In this document: piece by piece, positions 51,831 through 64,000 of the stretch
Numbering within the stretch: position 1 is the first letter of the stretch
Layout of the letters: each line of letters starts with the position of its first letter
DNA from: Mobula birostris
Lineage: Eukaryota
Direction: 5' to 3'
NCBI RefSeq assembly: GCF_030028105.1
Contig: NC_092374.1
Coordinates: 90,672,491-90,736,490, forward strand
DNA: 64,000 bases
The notes under the pieces: model-generated
Databases searched by the model: none
What the model saw: the letters and a program-made list of their open reading frames with translations, nothing else
Told to the model about the DNA's origin: nothing
Position numbers and translations under genes: made by a program

Positions 51831-52088
51831 TCCATCTATCTGACCGTTTCTCTGTCAATCAGTCTTTCTGTCTGCGCATCTCTCCATCCATCAATCTGAC
51901 TGTCTGCGTATCTGCCCGTCCATCCATCCAGTCTACCTGGCTGTCTATTTTCCCATCTCTCCAACCATAATTCTGTCTACCTGACCATTTCTACATCCTT
52001 CAATCTGTCTGACTGTCTATCTATCTGTCCATCTCTCCAACCATCTATCTATCTGGCCATCTCTCCATCTCTCTATCTGTCCATCTAT
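51831..52088. repeat. Degenerate tetranucleotide microsatellite (ATCT/GTCT/ATCC)n, i.e. GATA/GACA on the minus strand, terminating the array
   Basis: For example CTGTCTATCTATCTGTCCATCTCTCCAACCATCTATCTATCTGGCCATC near 52014-52062, with residual CATCTCTCCAACC satellite words. Confidence 0.8.
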
Positions 52089-52104
52089 GTGAATATTTGT
52101 CTAT

Positions 52105-52288
52105 TAGAACACAGGACAGTACAGCACATGAACCAAACCCTTTGGCCCACAGTACCTGTAACAAACACCATACCAGATGAAACTCAATCTCTCCTGCCTA
52201 CGCATGACCCATCCCCCTCCATACCCTGCACATTCATGTGTCTAAGCCACGGTAACACCACTATCCTATCTGCCTTCACCACCCTTTC
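52105..52288 (-). mobile_element. CR1-type LINE 3' end fragment
   Basis: Its reverse complement matches the + strand CR1 3' end at 53291-53510 (TGTGGGCCAAAGGG...; GGTGGTGAAGGCAGA) and ends in a ...TGTTCTA tail. Confidence 0.7.
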
Positions 52289-52400
52289 CTGATTCTGATA
52301 TGGGTCTCTGTTGGGACTGAGAGTGGGAAGGGGGTAGGAAGAAGGGAATCATAGTTGAGGAAGGGAAGGGAGAGGGGAGGTAGTGGGAGGCACCAGAGAG
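52289..52400 (+). repeat. Unclassified ~330-bp interspersed repeat, copy 1, left part (strand is relative to copy 2)
   Basis: GATTCTGATATGGGTCTCTGTTGGGACTGAG... is the reverse complement of 54400-54497. Confidence 0.75.
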
Positions 52401-53045
52401 AATCAGAATCAGGTTTAATATCACTGGCATATGTGGTGAAATTTGTTATTTTGTAGCAGCAGCACAACGCAATACTTAATAAAATAATAAAAACTGAATT
52501 ACAGGAAATATATAATCGTTAAATTAAATGAGTAGTACAAAAATAGAAATAAAAATGTAGTGAGGTAGTGCTCATGGGTTCAATGTTCATTCAAAATCAG
52601 ATGGCACAGGGGAAGAAGCTGTTCCTGAATCGCTGAGTGTGTGCCTTCAGGCTTCTGTACCTCCTTCCTGATGGTAGCAATGAGAACAAGGCATGTTCTG
52701 GGTAATAGGGGTCCTTACTGATGGACGCCTCCTTTCTTGGGCATCACAGCTTGAAGATGTCCTGGATATGATAGAGGCTAGTGCCCATGATGGAGCTGTT
52801 TGGGTTGACAACCCTCTGCAGTTCCCCCCCACCATCCCACCCTCACCCATACCAGACAGTGATGCAGCCAGTTGGAATGCTCTCCATGGTACAGCCGTAG
52901 AAGTTTCTAACTGTTTTTGGTATCATACCAAATCTCTTGAAACTCCTAATGAAATATAGCCATCGCTGTAGCTGCATCGATATGTTGGACCCAGGATAGA
53001 TCCTCAGAGATTATGACAACCAAGAACTTCAAGTTGCTCACACTT
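52401..53045 (-). mobile_element. 5'-truncated LINE fragment, probably Rex1/Babar-like, inserted into repeat copy 1
   Basis: Begins with an (AATCAG)n tail, followed by GGGGAAGAAGCTGTTCCTGAA...CTGTACCTCCTTCCTGATGGTAGC, which I recall as the antisense 3' region of fish Rex1/Babar LINEs. It splits the host repeat into two collinear halves. Family assignment is from memory. Confidence 0.55.
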
Positions 53046-53290
53046 CTCTGTAATCCACGAGCCAATTGCTTAGAATCAAATGACCTTGCCCTGGTATCTC
53101 AAGGCTAGGTGTGTCTGCACGTCGGCCACCAAACCCCCCACACCCCCCTGCACTCCTCCTCTGCCACCTGTCCCACACACCGCCACCCCCCACCCCCCAC
53201 CCCGCGGCACTCCATGCATGCCATTCCCAACAACATTTGCTCCCACCAGGTTTACAAACCCACTCTCTGCTCCACGCTGACAAATACAGT
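53046..53290 (+). repeat. Unclassified interspersed repeat, copy 1, right part
   Basis: Inverted homology to 54190-54400; ORF-track peptides PFPTTFAPTRFTNPLSAP (+, 53080) and PFPTSFAHTRFTNSLSAP (-, 54194). Confidence 0.75.
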
Positions 53291-53510
53291 AGAAAGTGAT
53301 GGATGCCTGGAATATGCTGCCTGGAGTGGTGGTAGAGGCAGAGGCAGACATGATAGAGACACTTCAGAGATCCTTGAATAAGCACATGAATTTGAGGAAA
53401 TTTATAGAATATGGACATTGTGTAGGCAGAATCGATTAGTTCAGTTGGCCATTTGATTACTAATTTAATTGGTTCACCACAGCATTGTGGGCCGAAGGGT
53501 CTGATCTTCT
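53291..53510 (+). mobile_element. CR1-type LINE 3' end (ORF2 C-terminus and 3' UTR)
   Basis: Translates KVMDAWNMLPGVVVEAEADMIETLQRSLNKHM, resembling the CR1 ORF2 C-terminal WNxLPxxVVEA motif, followed by TGTGGGCCGAAGGG. Confidence 0.75.
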
Positions 53511-53610
53511 GCTAGGCTTGACCTTATACCTTAACCCTTTCAAACTTGAGATCTTCCCCATCACACTTGCTTACCCTCACCACGGTTACTTCTTCCTCTT
53601 GCCTCTACAG

Positions 53611-53967
53611 GGCTCCTGGTTCGAGGAGGGATCCATCAGTCGCCAGCCTTACTCAAGGTCCCAGCGGGGGCCAGTGTGGAACTTGGCTGCCTCTTTGATG
53701 AGCCGGCAGTAGCGCCGACTGTAGCCGCTTTCCAGTGGGACCTCCCCAATGGGAGGCTCTACCACGTGCTGCCTGCCGGCAGGGTGGGAGGCAGTACCAG
53801 CTGGCGCGTCCACCTCCAGGCAGAGCTGAAGGCGAGGAGCAGCAGGCTGAGCATTAGCAGGGTCTCCTCTGCAGACAGTGGGCTCTATGTGTGTGTTGTC
53901 CAGCTTCTGGAGCCATTGCCCATTGTCCAGATGAAGGGAACAGCAACTCGTCTTCATATCATCCCAG
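53611..53967 (+). CDS. Exon encoding VJ-type Ig V domain 1 of a CD28/CTLA-4/NKp30-like IgSF receptor (internal exon, phase 1/1)
   Basis: Polypyrimidine acceptor TTCTTCCTCTTGCCTCTACAG|; 357-bp open frame (G)LLVRGGIHQSPALLKVPAGASVELGCLFD...FQW...RVHLQ...SRLSISRVSSADSGLYVCVVQLLEPLPIVQMKGTATRLHIIP; donor |GTATTG. Canonical B-strand Cys, C-strand Trp, DSGLYVC and a J-like G strand are present. Confidence 0.88.
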
Positions 53968-54124
53968 GTATTGGCTAGGCACACTCATATTCCCCCTGGC
54001 TCTACATGGGACTCCCTCCTGAGCCAGGTTGGATGGAGAAATAAGGTTCTTGGGAGTATCCAACACACAGACAAGCCATTCATCCCAACTAGTCCAAGCT
54101 AAGGTGTCCATCCAAGATAGAAGA

Positions 54125-54189
54125 TACAATACTGTGCACCCTAGCATACATTATTGCTAGAGTGCCCAAGACTTGTGCACAATACTGTA
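54125..54189. mobile_element. Tiny Tc1/mariner-like MITE remnant (hairpin)
   Basis: Inverted ends TACAATACTGTGCAC ... GTGCACAATACTGTA (13/15 match), inner inverted CTAGCA/TGCTAG, TA-flanked. The Tc1 assignment comes from recalled TIR sequence. Confidence 0.55.
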
Positions 54190-54500
54190 TTCGTCAACAT
54201 GGAGCAGAGAGTGAGTTTGTAAATCTGGTGTGAGCAAAGGATGTTGGGAATGGCGAGGGTGCAGCGTCACAGGAGGGTTGTGGGATTGGTGGCAAAGGAG
54301 TGTCAGGGCAGCGGGTGGTACGGATGCAGACACACCCAGTCCTGAGAAACCAGGCAAGGTTTGATTCCAAACAACTGGTTTCTTCATCATTACAGTATGT
54401 CCCTCTGGTGCTTCCCACTCTTTTCCTGTCTCCTTTTCCCAACCATGATTCCCCTCTCTCTGCCCTCAGTCCACAATAGAGACCCATATCAGAATCAGGT
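54190..54500 (-). repeat. Unclassified interspersed repeat, copy 2 (uninterrupted, inverted relative to copy 1)
   Basis: Reverse-complement match to 52289-52400 plus 53046-53290. Confidence 0.75.
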
Positions 54501-54544
54501 TTATCATCACTCACGTCATGAAATTTGGTTTATCTTGTGACACA

Positions 54545-54990
54545 TCCTTATCGACTCCAGCATCTTCCCAGCCACTGAGGCCAGGCTAACTGGCCTATCA
54601 TTTCATTTTTTTGCCCTCTCACTTCTTGCAGAGTGGAGTGACACTTGCTATTTTCTGGTCTTCCAGAAACTTGTGATCCTTGATAGATTATTACTAATAC
54701 CTTGACAATCTCCCCAGCCACCTTTTTCAGAACAGGGGGTGTAGTCGATCTGGCCCAGGTGACATACCTACCTTCAGACCTTTCAGCTTCCCAAGCACCT
54801 TCTCGCTAGTAATAACAACAGGACTTACTTCTGCCCCCTGACACTTCAAACTTCCGGCATACTGCTAGCACCTTCCACAGTGAAGATGGATGCAAAACAC
54901 TTTAGTTCGTCAGTCATTTCCTTGTCCTCCATTACTACCTCTCCAGTGTCATTTTCCCATGGGCCGATATCTACTCTCACCTCTCATTTA
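54545..54990 (-). mobile_element. CR1 LINE ORF2 internal fragment (degenerate)
   Basis: Minus strand translates VITSEKVLGKLKGLKVGMSPGPDRLHP/(frameshift)/LKKVAGEIV, resembling the CR1 KSPGPDGxHPRVLKE motif. Confidence 0.75.
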
Positions 54991-55182
54991 CTCTTTATGG
55001 AACATGAAGTGAAACGCGGCATTTGTGTCAAGTCAAATCAGTGAGGATTGTACTAGGGAAGCCTTCAAGTGTTACCACGCTTCTGATACCAACATAGCAT
55101 CCCACAACTTACTACAATGACACTTTACAATGACCAATTAACCTACTCGGTACGTATGAGTTTTGTGTCCTTTTCTATCCAG

Positions 55183-55554
55183 AATCCACTCCAGTCCCAG
55201 GATGGGTTTCCCAGTCCCCTGCCTCCCTCTCGGCGAGGGAAGGAGAGCCCGTTACACTGACGTGTATCTTACAGACAACGGCGACGGAGGCGGAAGAGAT
55301 GTCATTCATTTGGATGTGGGGGACTTCCTTAACCACCTGCTCCACAGTGCCCGGCGCCACCAGCAGGTGGCAGTGTGCTCCGGTTCCTGATCCGGGAGTC
55401 CTTATCACAGCTGATTTACAAACTAAATCATCAGAGTTCAGCATCACCCAGGTTTCTCTAGATCACAATGGAACTTATAAGTGTGATGTTGCGATCACCA
55501 AACCTCTGGCAAGGGTAATTTTACATGGAAATGGATCGACATTACTGGTGGAAG
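55183..55554 (+). CDS. Exon encoding VJ-type Ig V domain 2, with an extra Cys pair (internal exon, phase 1/1)
   Basis: Acceptor TTTTGTGTCCTTTTCTATCCAG|; 372-bp open frame (E)STPVPGWVSQSPASLSAREGEPVTLTCILQ...FIWMWGTSLTTCSTVPGATSRWQC...EFSITQVSLDHNGTYKCDVAITKPLARVILHGNGSTLLVE; donor |GTAGGT. Splices in frame to the upstream V exon. Confidence 0.88.
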
Positions 55555-55654
55555 GTAGGTAAAGTTACATTTCATTCACTTCACTCTTGTTCTTTCTGCA
55601 TGTACGCTGTGGCTTCCTTCATTCAATCGATTTTTCTTTCAATCTTTCGTGATA

Positions 55655-55840
55655 CAGAGAGGAGTAGGCCCTTTGAGCCACACAATCCCCATCAACCCAA
55701 TCCAGGACACTTTACAATGACCAATTAACCTACTCGGTATGTCTTTGGACTTGCGGGAGGAAACTAAAGCACCCTGGGGAAAGTAAAGCGCCCCGGGGAA
55801 AACCCACGCATTCCACGGGGAGGACAGACGAGACTCCTTA
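55655..55840 (-). mobile_element. SINE fragment (V-SINE/HE1-like)
   Basis: GTCTTTGGACTTGCGGGAGGAAAC...GGAAAACCCACGCATTCCACGGGGAG resembles the antisense central domain of V-SINE/HE1 SINEs (recalled consensus). Confidence 0.6.
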
Positions 55841-55864
55841 AGTAGCTCCTGAACCTGTTTAAGT

Positions 55865-55969
55865 ACCACTTATGCTGCCCATCCTCTTTCAGGTTTGATG
55901 AGTTGTGCATTCAGAGATGCTCTTCTACACTCCACTGTTGTAATCTGAAGTTATTTAAGATACGGTCAC
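55865..55969. mobile_element. Tc1-like DNA transposon fragment (target of the BEL insertion)
   Basis: GTTGTGCATTCAGAGATGCTCTTCT...CCACTGTTGTAA...GTTATTT matches my recollection of a widespread fish Tc1-like element. It is cut abruptly by the LTR's TG. Confidence 0.5.
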
Positions 55970-56650
55970 TGTGCTGCCTTAAGTCAGTTATTTTATTTGT
56001 CTTTTAGCACCCTTTGCTGGCAGTTTTGTATAGCAGTCATTGAGGTCAAGTGATCTGTGTCTCTAGTTGATGACATCATCAGTAGGCATCGAGACAGTTC
56101 TCCATGTAGAGTTGAGGGAGAGCTTGTATCTTTTCATCTGACATCATCCTGACATTCAGGTCTTTGAAAGCATCGTCAGTATGTAAAAGTAATCTTTTGG
56201 GTTTATTATTTATTGATGTATATGCATATTTCCACAAATCAGAGATATTTGAACGGTTTGTGTGGAGATAAAATACAGATGGAATATTCATGCAGGCCAG
56301 ATGTTCTGGCTAACCTGTAGTGAGAAAATGTGCATAAGATACATTGTATGTAGCAACATCTTGCTTACCAGTGGTCTATGATACAGTTGGAACTTATTTG
56401 TATACAAAATAATACTCAAGATACTGTATCATTTGTGGTATACTTAATGCTTGCCTTGTACTTACCATAATGGGAATTTGGACACCTTTTTTTCTTTCCA
56501 TCAGTTTCACCCTACCGCCAGTTGTTACATTAAAGCACATCAATTTGGAAGGTCTTTGTCAGTGTAGTAATTGGGGGTGTCAGTGTAGTAATTGGGGGTG
56601 GAGTTCATCTGCCTGTCAGTTCATGCAAGGCGTGTGAAGAGGGCAGGACA
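55970..56650 (+). repeat. BEL/Pao 5' LTR
   Basis: The first 129 bp match 63872-64000 with 6 substitutions. ATTAAA at 56529-56534. The 3' end at ...GGCAGGACA (56650) is inferred from a CA terminus just before the gag leader and cannot be confirmed inside the window. Confidence 0.75.
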
Positions 56651-56695
56651 GTAGAACGATACTTTCTGGAGTACAAAGGCAATTCTCTTTTCAAG

Positions 56696-58438
56696 ATGTC
56701 ACACAAAAAATCATCAGGATCTCAGTCACTACAGACAAGGTCTTATGCCTCAGATTCATCTTCATCCAAACGATCGTATGGCTCCTCCATCCGTGCAGCC
56801 GCAGCCTTAGCTCGTGCTGAAGCCCAGGCGGCTAAAGTGGAGACAGCATTTGCAGAAAAGGAACACCAAATCAAAATGGAACAAGCACGCTTAGAGGTAG
56901 CACTTGATGCCCTTCAATGGGAGAAAAGAGCTGCAGCTGTGGTAGCTAAAGCTGAAGCGTTAGAGGCAGCCATGGAAGAGCAAAATGAGGACCTCAGCTC
57001 CAAAATTGATCTTCAAACCCATGATCCAGCAGAGTGCACAGAAGGGTATGTGGAAGAGCAGGGAAAGCATGCTACCTATCAGTCAATACCTACATTAGAA
57101 GGAGTCTCTACTAACAGTGTTAGTCAACCAGCCTGTTGTACAGCGTGCACCCAAAGCTACTGTGCAGTGTCATGTTCAGGATGAGAAGCCCAGTCATAAC
57201 CATCATCCTCAGGAGCATGTTTCATTGGTTGGAAGTCAGTTAAAGCACACCAACGCTCACATGTCACACCCTTCGGGTAGAAAGCCCCAGATAGTGTGGA
57301 GTTCAAGGGGAGCCGTGGATCGCATGAGTTACACAGAGGTGTCCAATGACAGAGATCATCCTCAAGCACACCAGTATGCAGGAGCCGAACAGACTAATCC
57401 TGCTGATAGTCAGAGCATGTTGGACTGTCAGGTTTCTTGCAAGACACGAACTTGTGTCCTCAGAGCTTCTGCAGTTTAGTGACCGTCCTGAGAGTTACAG
57501 GGCTTGAAAAGCAAATTCCTGAATGCCATACGAGGTCTAATCCTTACAGACAGTGAAGAGATGGACCGCTTGGTGAAGTGGCCAGGTACTGAGCCAGCTG
57601 AACATGTGAGAAGGATAAGAGCTGAGCGTGTTCACCACCCACAGAGAGGGCTCAAAATGGTTTACGGGTCACCAGAAGTCATTGAGAATGTGCTGTTCAG
57701 GAGAGTGGATAGCTTCCCTAAGATCTCTAACAAGGACCACAGGAAGTTAAGAGAGCCAGGTGACTTGTTAATGGAGCTTGAAGCCACTAAATCTGATGGG
57801 GACCTGCCGGGACTCACCTACTTAGACACAGCCCGTGGTATCAACCCCATTGTGCAGAAGCTGCCATATAATTTGCAGAAGAGATGGCTCTCACATGGTT
57901 TTAAGTTCAAGGAAGAGCGTAATGTTCCCTTTCCCCCTTTTGCCTATTTTGTGGAGTTTGTTTGTCAGCAAGCCAAGATGTGAAATGATCCCAGCTTCTC
58001 TCTCATTGCAGGTAGTACTGACCCTCCAGTGATGGGAAAGTCAGCTCTTAAGTACAGCAGTCAGAGGCCTCCAGTCTTAGTTCACAAGGCTGAAGTGTCT
58101 CCTTACACCTCCTCTTTGGCTGGCACAACATGCAAGAGTAAGGTGGATCCTGCTAAGCAATGCCCCTTGCACAACAAACCGTACCCCCTCCAAAAATGCC
58201 GTGGATTTAGGGAGAAGTCCATGGAGAACAGGAAAGCCTTTTAAAAGCAGCATGGCAGCTGCTACAACTGCTGTGCATCATCAGCACAGCGAGCCAAAAC
58301 CTGTGACAGCAGCATGACGTGTGCCGAGTGTGGAAGCGAGAGTCACAGCTCAGCCCTGCACCCTGGGCCTGCTCCTTGGTCCTCAGAGGCCCAAACCCCT
58401 GCACGTGAGCATGGCAGGGTGGAAAGGAATAATATTGA
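56696..58438 (+). pseudogene. gag: BEL/Pao gag (frameshifted), with Cys/His knuckles
   Basis: MSHKKSS...ARAEAQAAK helical N-terminus; GINPIVQKLPYNLQKRW...PFPPFAYFVEFV; CPLHNKP...C; CAECGSESHSSALH. Split across several frames with internal stops. Confidence 0.85.
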
Positions 58439-59680
58439 TGTCACAACAGGGTGCTGGGAACAGACCCAAATGCAAGACACAGACACTGAAGTATAAGGAA
58501 CAGGACTTGAGTAGGGACGTGACAGGATTCAGACCAGGAGCAGGGACAAGAACACAGACTTGGGCTAGGGAAAGCAGGACCAGGACTAGGAACCATAGAC
58601 TAGGAGACAAGGCTTCAACTCCTAGCCCGAGACGGGGCAAGGACCCAGAACCTGGGTCTTGCCTTGGGCTCAGACCCCAGAACCAGGCGAGGACATGACA
58701 TGGCTTCAGGACAGGACATGGCTGAGGTCTAGAGGCCTGAGTATAGAGACAGGCTGGAATCTTTGCTCTTGAGGCTTGAGGCTGGGGTCTTGGGTCTTGA
58801 GCTTGGCTTGGGATCCTCAAGGCTTGGGTTCTTGAAGCTCAGAGACAGACTGGGAACCGAACATCAACATGGAGCCAGGACTTATCCTTCAACAAGCCAG
58901 GACTCATCTTTAACACAACACTGACATGAGACAGGACAGAGCATAAACATAGAGCCAAGACTTATCCTAAGAGAAGCCAGGACTCAACTTCATCTCCACA
59001 CCAAGGTGGGACAGGTCTCTCCATCAGGTAATGGCAGAACAGCCAGACTTACCCAACAGAGGCAAGGACAAGACAGGACAGGACAGGACAGGTCCCCCCC
59101 CCCCCACCATAGCAGCCTGGCTCACACCACAGAGGCAAGGATAAGACAAGACAAGACAAGACAAGACAAGACAAGACAGGACCCCCCCCCCCCCCCCCCG
59201 ACAGGGCAAAAGCAGACCAGCCTGACTTACCCCACAGAGGCAGGGACAAGAAGAGACAAACACCAAAGAACAACACAGTTCCATCTCTGCTCTGGGGTAG
59301 CTCCAAGTCTCAGTTCAGCCAGCAACCTCAGCTGGCCACAGAAACTGCTGGATCCCTACCTAGCTCAGAGTGGCTGGCTGCCACTCAGCTGGCCCAGGAA
59401 ACAGCCAAATCCATACCACAAAGACTACCCCAACAAGTGGCAACAAGGCTCCATGAAGCAGTGGTCCTCCAACCAGGCATAGAGATTACAAATGGTTTCA
59501 CTAGCCTTCCATCAGCAGGTTGCTCCAAGGGGGACTGACAAGACAAACCAGCAGCCCACACTCAATCCCAAGGCTACTTATATTGCAAGCCCAAAGATGG
59601 GAATCAGGTGCCTATGATTAACTCAAACAAGGGACAGTTGGAAGACCCGGAGTCCTGAGTCCACGGACCGGACCATGACA
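58439..59680 (-). mobile_element. Nested solo LTR (1,242 bp), probably Gypsy-type, antisense
   Basis: TGTCA...TGACA termini; perfect 5-bp TSD ATTGA at 58434-58438 and 59681-59685. Excision restores the host frame (EHGRVERNNI-EEATVSSSCTQFC). A minus-strand TATA-like AATATAAGTAG lies near 59575. Superfamily and strand are inferred. Confidence 0.85.
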
Positions 59681-62600
59681 ATTGAAGAAGCTACTGTTTC
59701 CTCAAGCTGCACCCAGTTCTGTGTGGGAGACCTCACTGGAAAATTGTGCTCAAAGATTTGTCTCGTGAAAGTCTACCCAGCTGGCCAGCAGGAAAATGCA
59801 ATCCAGTTATTTGCGATACTGGACGATCAGAGTAATCGCTCATTGGTAAGGTCTGAGTTCTTTGACCTTTTTAACATCAAAGACCACAATTCTCCTTACT
59901 CCCTCAAGACATGAGCTGGTGTGATTGAGACAGCAGGCAGAAGAGTGCATGGCTTTCAGGTGGAATCCATGGACGGACAGGTTATTCTCTCTCTCCCAAC
60001 ACTGATTGAGTGTAACGCGATCCCGAATAATCACTCTGAAATCCGCACACCGGAAGCAGCACTGCATCAGGCTCATCTGAAATCACTGGTGCAAAAGATC
60101 GCAGAGCTCGACCCTCAGGCTCCCATCGTGATCCTGCTCGGAAGAGACATCATAAGGATCCACAAAGTACGGAAACAGATAAATGGGCCACATGACTCCC
60201 CATGCTCAAAAACTGGACTTGGGGTGGGTAATTGTTGGCAATGTCTGTCTAGGAAATGTCTACAAGCCGGCCACTGTGAGCACCTACTATACCAACACTC
60301 TGGAAAATGGCCGCCATGCCGTCTTTCAACCATGCCCTAATCACTATGTCGTGAAGGAAAAGTGGTATGGCAGCAAGGCCTCAGGTCTGCCCGCATTTGT
60401 CCCTGTGGAGGGTCCCACATGTGAGGACTATGGAGAAAAACCTGGGTTGCAGTGTCTTTCAACAGACAAAAGATGATGACAAGATGGGCCCTTCAGTTGA
60501 GGATATACTTTTTCTGAAGACGATGGAAGAGGGAGCCTATAAAGATGAGGACAATAGCCGAGTAGCTCCCTGCCATTCAGACAGCCATGACCTCACCTTC
60601 CCAACAGCAGGTCACAAGCAGCAGACCGTCTTTCTTCACTGCAACACTCCTTTAACAAGAAGCCTGAGTTGAAGAATCATTTCATCTCATTCATGGAAAA
60701 CATATTCCAGAATGGCCACGCAGAGGTAGCTCCTCCCCTTGGAACAGATGAAGAATGTTGGTACCTCCCTTGCTTTGGGGTTTACCATCCAAAGAAACCA
60801 GGCCAGATTCAAGTGGTCTTTCATTCAAGTGCTCAACACAAGGGAGTCTCACTGAATCAGGTCCTCCTGACTGGCCTGGACCTCAACAACAGTCTTCTTG
60901 GGGTACTTATCCGCTTTCGTAAGGACTCCATTGCCATCACAGTGGACATACAACAGATATTCCACTGTTTTCTTGTCAGGCCGGAAGACAGGAATTTCCT
61001 GAGGTTCCCTTGGTATCGAGAGAACAACCCAGAAAATGACATCACAGAGTATTGCGTGAAAGTGCACGTCTTTGTGAATAGTCCATCGCCAGCAGTCACC
61101 ATTCACTGTCTCAGACGAGCTGCTGAAGAAGGGGAGAGAGAATTTGGCAAGGATGCAAGGCAGTTCGTTGAAAGAGACTTTTATGTTGATGATGGACTTA
61201 AGTCCCTGTCCACATCAGAGGCTGCTATCGACCTGCTCAAAAGAACACAGAACATGCTGGCTTGCTCCAACCTCAGGCTACATAAAATAGCCTCAAACAG
61301 CAGAGGGGTCATGGAGACATTCCCCGCTGAGGATCACACCAATGACCTTAAAGATCTGGATCTTGGTGTCGACTCCCTACCTGTACAGTGCAGCCTTGGA
61401 CTCTGCTGGGACTTGAAGACAGACACTTTCCTATTCCAGGTAGCAGGAGAAGGGAAGCCGTTCACTCGCCAGGGTGTATTATCAACAGTGAACAGCTTAT
61501 GTGACCCGTTGGGATTCGTAGCACCTGTCACTATACGAGGCAAGGCCTTACTTCGAGAACTCTCAATGGAAATGAGTGATTGGGATGCTCCATTACCTCC
61601 AGACAAAGAAGAACTATGGGAAAATTGGAAAGAATCCTTAAAAGAGCTTCAGCACCTGAAGATCCCAAGACCATACACAAGTGTGTCTCCAATGGAGGCC
61701 CAGCACAAGGAACTCTATGTCTTTTCAGATGCTTCAGATAAGGCAATAGCTGCAGCTGCCTATCTAAAGATCTCAGATGCAGAAGGGAACTGCCACATCG
61801 ACTTTATATTAGGCAAGACAAGATTAGCTGCACGTCCAGAGCAAACTATACCTCGGTTGGAGTTGTGTGCTGCGGTGATGGCTGTGGAAATGGCGGAGCT
61901 CATTACCTTTGAGATTGACATCGAGTTTGATGCGGTCACTTCCTATACAGACAGCAAGGTAGTTCTGGGCTACATTTATGATGAAAAGTGGAGATTCAAC
62001 GTTTATGTCAACAATTGGATCCAGAGGATCAGGAGAGGCACACAGCCACAACAATGGCATTATGTGTCCACTGAACACAACCCTGCAGACCATGCCACAA
62101 GGTCCATCCCTGCAGCCCGTCTGAAAGACACCACCTGGTTTACCGGGCCTGCGTTCTTATCTCAGCCAGAGAAAACTTCTCTCAAGACAGCCGTCTTTGA
62201 ACGAGTGGACCCAGAACAAGATAAAGAAATTCACATGCAAGTGACAGTGCTCACCTCCACCGCCCAAGACAGCCGACTTGGATCTCAGCGCTTTCAGCAC
62301 TTTTCTAACTGGAGGGCTCTTACTCATGTCATATCTTGTCTCAGACATATTGCATGCCTTTTCAAGAAGACTTCAGAAGATTCTACAGGGAGCTGCAAGG
62401 GATGGCATCGTTGTGAGACACCATACACAGTGGAAGAACTCAGTCAGAGCAAAAATGTCATCATTCGATCCGTGCAGCAGGAAACTTACGCTGAAGAAAT
62501 GGAATGCATCAGGACCCAAAGAGATATCCCTAAGGACAGTCCTCTGAGGATGCTGGATCCATTTATTGGTGAGGACGGCCTATTAAGAGTCGGAGGACGT

Positions 62601-63795
62601 ATACAGGAATCACAGTTGGGACATGAAGAGAAGAGGCCCCTCATCATTCCCAAATGGCATCATCTTGCATTACTCCTTGTGCAACATTGCCATGTGGAGT
62701 CACAACATCAAGGACGCCATTTTAATGAAGCGCTGTCCGCTCAGCTGGTTACTGGATTGTGGGTGCCAAAAGGTGTGTAATCAGTTTCATCTTCATGTAC
62801 ATCACCTGCCGTAAGCTTCGGGGGACATGTGAAGTCCAGAAAATGGCTGACTTACCTCCTGATAGACTCAGCATGGAACCGTCTTTCACATATGTTGGTA
62901 TTGTATTTGAACCCTGGACCATCTCTGTGCGCCATGCAAGAGGTGGCTAGGCCAAAAGTAAAAGATGGTCAGTTTTATTTACCTGCTTATGCATCAGAGC
63001 CATCTACCTCGAGGTCATAGAGTCCATGGGCAGCTCAAGTTTTATAAATGCCCTGAGGAGCTTCCTGGCGATCCGTGGGCCAGTCAAGCAAATTCGTTCT
63101 GACTGGGGAATGAACTTCATCAGAGCATGCAAAGATCTAGGAATGTCCTCCAATGTTGACGAAAATGTGGTGAAGAGGTATCTCTCAGAAAAGGGCTGTA
63201 CCAGGACATTCAATCCGCTCCATTCCTCCCATATGGGAGGAGCATGGGAGAGAATGATCGGCATCGCCTGCAAAATCCTGGACTCCATGCTTCTGCAGTC
63301 AGGGCCTTCTAGACTCACTCATGAGGTTCTCACCACCTTTATGGCCGAGGTGATGGCCATTGTGAACAATAGACCTCTAAGGCCCATGTCTACAGACGCA
63401 GAAGATCCATTCATTCTCACTCCTGCCACACTGCTCACACAGAAAAGCAGCCCTTATCCCATTCTTCCAGGTGAGTTCGAGAGCGAGGACCTGTGCAAGA
63501 GACAGTGGCGACAGGTACCTTCTGGGACAGATGGCGCAAACAATACTTGCCTTCCTTGCAGTTACGAAGGAAATGGATGTCCTGTAGGCCAAACATTACA
63601 CCAGGATCTGTGGTGCTCATGAGGGATTGTCAATCCAGGAGAAGTGACTGGCCTTTAGGAGTCATAACTCGGATATTTCCCAGCAAGGACGGAAGAGTCC
63701 GTAAGATTGAGGTGAAGATCAACAGAGGTGATGGAACAAAGCTGTTACTCAGGCCTGTGGCTGAAGTAGTCTTGCTGCTCTCCCCTAAGGACTAG
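59681..63795 (+). pseudogene. pol: BEL/Pao pol (protease-RT-RNase H-integrase), disabled
   Basis: In-frame TGA at 59912-59914; several frameshifts between 60190 and 60600 and after 62760. RT VVFD has become VVFH, and the first integrase Asp appears lost (YVGIVFEPW). The longest intact stretch is 60669-62780 (703 aa, RT-RNase H). Confidence 0.9.
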
Positions 63796-63871
63796 GAACG
63801 AGGGACTTCCTCATTTAGAGGTGAATTGTGAAAGTGTTATATTGTTTTATCTAGGGATACCAGGCTGCGAG

Positions 63872-64000
63872 TGTGCTGCCTTAAGTCAGTTATTTTATTT
63901 GTCATTTAGCACCCTTTGCTGGTAGTTTTGTATAGCAGTCATTTAGGTCATGTGATCTGTGTCTCTGGTTGATGACATCATCAGTAGGCGTCGAGACAGT
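63872..64000 (+). repeat. BEL/Pao 3' LTR (truncated by the window end)
   Basis: Matches 55970-56098 at 123 of 129 positions; preceded by a degenerate purine-rich tract (GGGATACCAGGCTGCGAG). Confidence 0.92.

Follow-up and report, generated by a model that had tools for sequence, protein, structure and literature searches.

Receptors of the immunoglobulin superfamily (IgSF) in which a variable (V) domain and a J-like terminal strand (pattern G-x-G-T/S-x-L-x-V) are joined in the germline (VJ domains) occur in several described systems, and those of cartilaginous fish are raw material for arguments about the origin of antigen and costimulatory receptors. The CD28 family, given as CD28, CTLA-4, ICOS, CD28H/TMIGD2, CD28HL1-3, CD28X and PD-1 in a 2024 survey (Quiniou et al., PMC11599192), has the V part and J-like strand in one exon and is defined by a single V domain; for its chondrichthyan CD28/CTLA-4-like genes, the motif P-[P/L]-P plus G-x-G was reported. 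The NITRs of bony fish, a diversified multigene V family, combine a V with an I-type domain, and UrIg and UrIg2 are secreted molecules of V-C1 type (UrIg, V-C1-C1-C1). Here we compare with these systems a stretch of 64,000 nucleotides from the manta Mobula birostris (contig NC_092374.1, positions 90,672,491 to 90,736,490 of the forward strand; the window), in which two V exons, D1 and D2, belong to a gene that RefSeq automatically names “immunoglobulin superfamily member 3-like.” We read it as an expressed membrane glycoprotein built on a base conserved across sharks and rays, to which V exons were added in batoids and whose membrane-distal domain may bind a ligand through a proline-tipped loop; to this explanation as a whole, with its observed parts weighted most, we assign a probability of about 0.75. 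So understood, the gene is a variant within the well-known immune-type receptors of the IgSF and no new kind of system.

Gene structure, transcripts and protein architecture

Both exons (Table 1) have AG/GT borders: acceptor ctctacAG/GGCTCC at 53610/53611 and donor CCCAG/GTattgg at 53967/53968 for D1, and acceptor ctatccAG/AATCC at 55182/55183 and donor GGAAG/GTaggt at 55554/55555 for D2. Their translations are free of stops over 118 and 123 codons, respectively. The Pfam V-set profile matched D1 with an E value of 1.3e-5 over positions 1-107 of 109 (25.7 bits, slightly below the cut-off of 26 bits) and D2 with 1.1e-9 over positions 1-95. The D2 exon, which carries four cysteines (in strands B and C', before strand D, and in strand F), ends in the G strand HGNGSTLLVE with a canonical G-x-G (G-N-G-S); the corresponding D1 strand in mantas and stingrays is KGTATRLHI (G-x-A), with G-x-G-T retained in sawfish, skate and sharks. 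Because a single phase-1/1 exon holds each V domain together with its J-like strand, nothing rearranges here. In this the earlier note, made from the sequence alone, proved right: it had described two sound phase-1/1 exons, each encoding a complete V domain that ends in a J-like strand, and a putative non-rearranging receptor.

Expression was assessed from assembled transcript contigs of RNA runs aligned to window positions 53400-55800, X1 and X2 denoting runs from two Mobula species. A 1548-nt contig of X1 and a 1551-nt contig of X2 span both exons and omit exactly 53968-55182 (GT..AG), so the in-frame junction from 53967 to 55183 that the earlier note had predicted is present in transcripts of two species. 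Contig depth on both exons was 81 (X1) and 16 (X2) and was 0 on unique bins of the intron, where very high and patchy depth was confined to short repeat pieces. Base differences in X2 yield 6 of the 8 residues that distinguish the M. birostris and M. hypostoma proteins, indicating the same expression and splicing in both. The contigs extend 170 nt upstream, reading VVPICLLLIK/G, the end of a signal peptide, and about 650 nt downstream, beginning ESPLTVSQLP, the start of a third V domain; neither the leader sequence nor the ESPLTVSQLP sequence was found within the 64-kb window.

The spliced 242-amino-acid translation is an exact match to residues 18-259 of M. birostris XP_072114497.1 (isoform X2 of the RefSeq gene; 496 amino acids), and the window exons are exons 2 and 3 of that gene. 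The protein opens with a signal peptide (1-16) and three V domains (D1, 17-135; D2, 136-259; D3, 260-379), followed by a stalk carrying a single N-glycan site, a membrane helix (about 412-436) and a tail; seven RefSeq isoforms differ solely in the tail past residue ~466, its length of 33-62 residues being varied by alternative 3' exons. The gene is thus an expressed type I membrane glycoprotein with three V domains, a stalk and one membrane helix, a conclusion that we hold as all but certain. The two-domain receptor of the earlier note does not stand, since XP_072114497.1 has three V domains and its orthologues have one to four; the impression of two arose because the window edge cuts the gene before D3, whose exon lies about 3.4 kb past the window end. 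Calling the gene uncharacterised was right insofar as a literature search found no paper describing it or its family, and the PMC11599192 survey omits it; its existence was already known, as the public gene model with seven isoforms attests.

At 99.8 kb in M. birostris and 105 kb in M. hypostoma, the gene is far longer than in sawfish (13 kb) or thorny skate (6.6 kb). Introns about tenfold larger than those of skate and sawfish, holding a 52-kb satellite and a long terminal repeat (LTR) element, could belong to a decaying, nonfunctional locus with noise transcripts, and seven alternative tails and an excess of replacement over silent changes in D1 between the two Mobula species would fit such decay. 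That excess amounts to 4 replacement and 1 silent difference in D1 (53661-53895); in D2 (55220-55412), 7 differences are silent and 2 are replacements (3 when the proteins are compared). Such counts are too low to infer selection. Against decay, the reading frames are open and the splice sites canonical, and contigs spliced as expected reach sizeable depth in two species; moreover, all Ig hallmark residues and an invariant FG loop are retained, and the domain architecture is identical in Hypanus and Hemitrygon, the two other stingrays examined. We consider a decaying locus extremely improbable.

A family known so far from sharks and rays only

A search with D2 against 1.84 billion representative proteins gave 41 matches, the few strong ones all belonging to sharks and rays, and the manta protein itself came up in a subsequent search. 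Family members are named automatically or as “uncharacterized.” One D1 gene, conserved and apparently single-copy, was found per species, and the architectures differ by lineage: D1-D2-D3 in Mobula (2 species), Hypanus and Hemitrygon; D1-D2-D3, plus D1-D2-D3-D3 in one isoform, in the sawfish Pristis; D1-D2 in the skate Amblyraja; and D1 only, followed by a stalk with repeated “GTNESK,” in Narcine and nine shark species (Heterodontus, Heptranchias, Cetorhinus, Carcharodon, Stegostoma, Hemiscyllium, Rhincodon and two Scyliorhinus species). In sawfish and skate, too, each V domain has an exon to itself, with the phase unchanged. Stalk and membrane helix, the latter with a common S-L-L-C...G-L, can be aligned in all proteins of the D1 lineage, indicating that the orthologues are built on one base. 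The family forms a natural series, with one head domain and anchor throughout and one to four V domains according to lineage.

In an unrooted maximum likelihood tree of 46 domains, D1 sequences of sharks and batoids formed a clade at 87/98, which is under the support threshold of the tool and is drawn as an unresolved fork; batoid D1 was monophyletic (98/99), the D2 clade was batoid-only (99/93), and the D3 clade (100/100) stood beside V domains of shark relatives with tails bearing immunoreceptor tyrosine-based inhibitory motifs (ITIMs). In these relatives, here termed S-type, the V domains number from one to three, and the tail holds both an ITIM and an immunoreceptor tyrosine-based switch motif (ITSM; e.g., VVYSMV...TEYAVV); S-type and N-type shark relatives alike carry tyrosine signaling motifs, unlike the D1 lineage. 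To judge by their sequences, D2 and D3 are related to the V domains of the ITIM/ITSM-tailed shark relatives, so that the added exons and the shark inhibitory receptors would have a common source. Such genes share a chromosome or contig with D1 in three species: in the whale shark, a D1 gene and an S-type gene are about 150 kb apart on one chromosome; in the horn shark, the two lie on one contig; and in the sawfish, the D1 gene has a head-to-head neighbor, a D2-D3 gene with an anchor of its own, whose D3 is nearly identical to the D3 copies of the D1 gene. We propose that batoids inserted V exons of the neighboring receptor type between the exons for D1 and the stalk, one in skate, two in stingrays and mantas and three in the sawfish isoform. 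A history in which D1, stalk and helix form a base found from horn shark to manta, with V exons added in batoids, is in our judgment very probable. What is new is this VJ-type receptor base, conserved across sharks and rays, with V exons accreted stepwise in batoids.

The same comparison bears on the RefSeq name, according to which the gene would be a short member of the EWI family (IGSF3, IGSF2/CD101, PTGFRN and IGSF8), i.e., a tetraspanin-associated tandem-V protein. EWI proteins have about four to eight Ig domains. The likeness is one of tandem V-set domains, a single membrane helix and a short basic tail, with cysteines at and past the membrane boundary that recall EWI proteins; the best Swiss-Prot structural matches were IGSF3, PTGFRN, IGSF8 and IGSF2 (E values of 3e-14 to 1e-11; 13-22% identity), and Ig_IgSF3 clusters were among the Atlas neighbors. 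The template modeling (TM) scores of these matches, however, were only about 0.4, and single-chain variable fragments (scFvs) likewise led the PDB list, as any V-V tandem matches. Pfam Ig_IgSF3 (PF28276) gave no match up to an E value of 10, there is no E-W-I string in XP_072114497.1, and the domains are far fewer, with the single V of the shark orthologues unlike any EWI protein. Among the 20 of the 41 D2 matches whose names were checked, none is a genuine orthologue of IGSF3, IGSF2, IGSF8 or PTGFRN, the sole label of EWI type being an automatic “PTGFRN-like” on a shark member of the family. In view of the missing motif and profile match, the low TM scores and the single-domain sharks, we take the name to be an artefact of domain architecture; EWI membership is improbable, and the misleading label “IGSF3-like” should not be propagated.

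A cartilaginous-fish homologue of the bony-fish NITRs, the second reading put forward in the earlier note, is very improbable. Both systems have tandem Ig domains that do not rearrange and whose J-like strands lie in germline-joined exons, and ITIM-tailed relatives occur in the same chromosomal region. Yet D1 is one conserved gene per species and not a diversified V repertoire, and both domains of the manta gene that were modeled, D1 and D2, are predicted to be full V-set, with no I-type second domain. Nor does the D1 lineage show an ITIM or a consistently conserved charge in the membrane helix, one or the other of which is typical of NITRs. No NITR chain was among the PDB sequence matches listed. 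The proposal, tested only indirectly in this way, thus gained no support.

The D1 loop and the CD28-family question

Among the aligned D1 domains (8 sequences, 7 species), Q-x-LEPLPI is invariant and 35 columns do not vary, the entire FG loop among them; in a wider set, lamniform sharks have LKPLPI, with K for E. At position +7 from the F-strand cysteine, a proline is near-invariant whatever the domain type; the D1 pattern is Y-V-C-x6-P-L-P-x5-G-x-(G/A), and D3 has x6-P-P. This invariant proline hairpin of D1 is also new. An AlphaFold2 model of D1 and D2 from 34 aligned rows reached a mean predicted local distance difference test (pLDDT) score of 87.7 (predicted TM score, 0.53; the orientation of the domains is unreliable), with D1 blocks at means of 85-96 and the N-terminal block at 68. 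In it, the strand order of each domain is that of a full V-set, C' and C'' included, and PLPI falls between strands 91-101 and 106-109: the F strand leads into Q-L-L-E, the tip is P-L-P-I, the return is V-Q-M-K, and the G strand is T-R-L-H-I-I. With PLPI at the hairpin tip, LEPLPI is predicted to occupy the place of complementarity-determining region 3 (CDR3) of antigen receptors and of MYPPPY in CTLA-4, where the position of that motif is well established. A separate model of D1 alone (8 sequences; mean pLDDT, 63) was too poor for a fold search.

The fold itself does not single out a family. D1 was structurally closest to a T cell receptor (TCR) V-delta domain (Z score, 15.0; root mean square deviation, 2.4 Å; 26% identity) and D2 to chain 2ij0_E, presumably a TCR V-beta chain (Z score, 14.9), with dozens of others no more than 1.5 Z units away, and Foldseek against the PDB together with a wide VIA-align search returned generic V-set matches alone (scFv, TCR, MPZ, Siglec-15 and PILR). 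Since these generic matches all fall at Z scores of 13.5-15, the candidate families are not separable by fold; the profile and structure searches that the earlier note had called for bear out the V-set fold and are too generic to assign a family. The full V-set fold, with strands C' and C'' and a G strand of J type, is shared with antigen-receptor V domains, NKp30 and UrIg/UrIg2; the last of these was considered and set aside because its architecture differs. The best whole-domain matches in structure and, among the matches listed, in sequence are antigen-receptor V domains (TCR V-alpha/V-delta and IgNAR V, the latter among the best for D2), from which the manta gene differs in its lack of recombination and of a C1 domain and in its several tandem V domains on a membrane anchor.

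We propose that D1, as the membrane-distal domain, is the ligand-binding head and that its F-G hairpin (Q-x-LEPLPI-x-x-M-x-G) could play the role of MYPPPY in CD28 and CTLA-4, its partner being conserved and possibly B7-like; D2 and D3 would be spacers that lift or extend the head, or auxiliary binding modules. For ligand binding through the D1 loop, we see about even chances. If the ligand were of B7 type, proline-loop recognition would extend past the single-domain relatives of CD28. No ITIM, ITSM or YxN/YxxM motif was found in 22 proteins and isoforms of the D1 lineage, most of whose tails are free of tyrosine, as is that of the manta (five have a single tyrosine outside any motif), and the alignment of this lineage has no consistently conserved charged residue in the membrane helix. 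The lack of tail motifs and of a conserved helix charge points either to partner-dependent signaling or to a counter-receptor or decoy. In the first case, which we put forward tentatively and with less confidence than ligand binding, a signaling partner might be recruited via the conserved membrane helix (the SLLC...GL motif); in the second, the protein might act on the ligand of the ITIM-bearing relatives.

Several points weigh against our preferred account of a conserved base with added V exons and a ligand-binding D1 head. The second J glycine of D1 is gone in mantas and stingrays (G-T-A, G-I-A), and the 4 replacement differences against 1 silent difference in D1 imply that this domain is not strongly constrained beyond its loop. 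As the tree is unrooted, exons may have passed either way between the D1 gene and its neighbors, and D1 only in Narcine versus D1-D2 in skate requires one loss or two gains. A tyrosine-free tail in seven isoforms could be a tail that does nothing, and the function is wholly inferred.

The strongest competitor to that account is true membership in the CD28 family, CD28/CTLA-4-like or CD28H-like, with a secondary gain of domains in batoids and with the ITIM/ITSM relatives as the chondrichthyan counterpart of bony-fish CD28HL3. In its favor, D1 has the P-[P/L]-P plus G-x-G pattern listed for chondrichthyan CD28/CTLA-4-like genes in the supplementary motif table of PMC11599192, together with the near-invariant proline seven residues past the F-strand cysteine of the same table. 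The V part and J-like strand share one exon, the F-G prolines (P-L-P in D1, P-P in D3) are followed by G-x-G, and G strands begin with G-N-G-[ST]. Of the PDB chains that align over the whole D1 F-G segment, CTLA-4 ranked best (E value of ~0.002 over 40 residues), followed by two TCR chains (0.004 and 0.02); for D3, CTLA-4 (0.008) came behind TCR delta and a shark antigen receptor. Among the PDB matches listed, PD-1 reached 1.5e-8 with the D2/D3 profile, and PD-1 and CTLA-4 clusters were among the Atlas feature neighbors. D2 and D3 share an extra cysteine pair (C' and pre-D) whose positions resemble those in tetrapod CD28H, the shark orthologues are type I proteins with just one V domain, and the ITIM and ITSM tails of the shark relatives, a likeness to PD-1 and CD28HL3 not present in the D1 lineage itself, resemble those of CD28HL3.

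Other features argue against membership. The manta protein has three V domains and the lineage one to four, versus the single V that defines the family; of the dimerization features of CD28, CTLA-4 and CD28X, the stalk cysteine and the YxxxxT membrane motif are both absent (the helix ends in S-Y-C-I-A-R-R-T, with T at +6, not +5), and there is no tyrosine signaling motif. In whole-domain profiles, TCR V-alpha (1.5e-10) and pIgR (2e-10) beat any CD28-family chain among the matches listed, where TCR chains predominated, and CTLA-4 was not found with the D2 F-G segment. The lineage also lies outside the nine gene sets of the 2024 survey: its motifs (LEPLPI, LKPLPI, GNGSVV, KPLAMQ and others) were not found in the supplements of PMC11599192, whose text was machine-read with positive controls found, so that a miss is not absolute. 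These genes were thus left out although the surveyed genomes include species that have them, since epaulette shark, catshark and great white shark, all covered there, have D1 orthologues. When the single-V relatives served as a search profile, four proteins were returned and no named family. With the resemblance confined to the F-G region, CD28-family membership is unproven, and we regard it as an unlikely, if serious, alternative; the CD28-family reading in the earlier note is not borne out by the number of V domains, the dimerization motif or the tyrosine motifs, leaving the proline motif and a CTLA-4 match at ~0.002.

The likeness of the shark ITIM/ITSM relatives to bony-fish CD28HL3 is nonetheless new in its own right. 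Their FG loop reads Y-x-C-Q-V-x-I-L-K-P-L-P, and axolotl and a caecilian have similar single-V ITIM/ITSM proteins; CD28HL3 itself was not detected in Chondrichthyes by the survey (PMC11599192). A bolder version of the CD28 reading, still less likely, is that the D1 lineage and its ITIM/ITSM relatives make up an undescribed elasmobranch branch of the CD28/CD28H/PD-1 superfamily, with a CD28HL3 counterpart included, in which height and valency would be set by exchange of VJ exons and LEPLPI would bind a B7-like ligand encoded on the same chromosome. If this were so, a receptor-ligand pair would be inherited together on one chromosome.

Two observations on gene neighborhoods may be added. On the same 210-Mb chromosome record of M. 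birostris, one RefSeq model appears to fuse two genes, the first a single-V relative of the family (of the M. hypostoma LOC134346253 type) and the second a V domain of B7-like type that, among solved structures, is closest to CD276/B7-H3 (E value of 1.3e-10) and CD86; a receptor-ligand neighborhood on the chromosome of the gene studied here is possible. At the skate orthologue (Amblyraja radiata CM021408.1, ~1.36 Mb), the gene directly upstream belongs to the galactose-3-O-sulfotransferase family. In humans, GAL3ST2 lies close to PDCD1 on 2q37.3, a lead to a possible synteny of PD-1 type.

Repeats around the exons

Most of the window is intronic repeat sequence (Table 1). A C-rich tandem array identified with Tandem Repeats Finder (TRF), whose consensus starts AGTCCGTCTACCAGACC, occupies 52 kb or more of the first intron of this expressed gene.

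Table 1. Features of the window; positions count from its first nucleotide
Feature	Positions	Strand	Description
C-rich tandem array	1-51852		~32-nt unit, ~1660 copies (TRF); 75% matches; GC skew -0.5
Intron 1, 3' part	1-53610	+	Leader exon placed upstream of the window, as leader sequence not found in the window
Decayed repeat sequence	51853-53610
D1 exon	53611-53967	+	V domain D1, residues 17/18-135 of XP_072114497.1; phase 1/1
LEPLPI codons	53907-53924	+	Predicted tip of D1 F-G hairpin, CDR3-equivalent
D1-D2 intron	53968-55182	+	1215 nt, GT..AG; packed with repeat fragments
D2 exon	55183-55554	+	V domain D2, residues 136-259; phase 1/1
D2-D3 intron, start	55555-64000	+	Whole intron ~11.8 kb
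BEL/Pao LTR-retrotransposon pol region	~56700-63800	+ (sense)	Open reading frames (ORFs), Peptidase_A17; in the D2-D3 intron

The pol frame of the BEL/Pao element is split into several ORFs, with Peptidase_A17 matched at an E value of 5e-42 in a 703-amino-acid ORF at 60669-62780. Three repeat pieces near the exons (54465-54514, 55101-55181 and 55668-55748) were covered by contigs to depths in the thousands in each of four RNA runs, and the motif cactttacaatgaccaattaacctactcggta flanks the D2 exon at 55117-55150 and 55709-55741. The pieces that carry it look like a highly expressed or highly repeated element resembling a short interspersed element (SINE).

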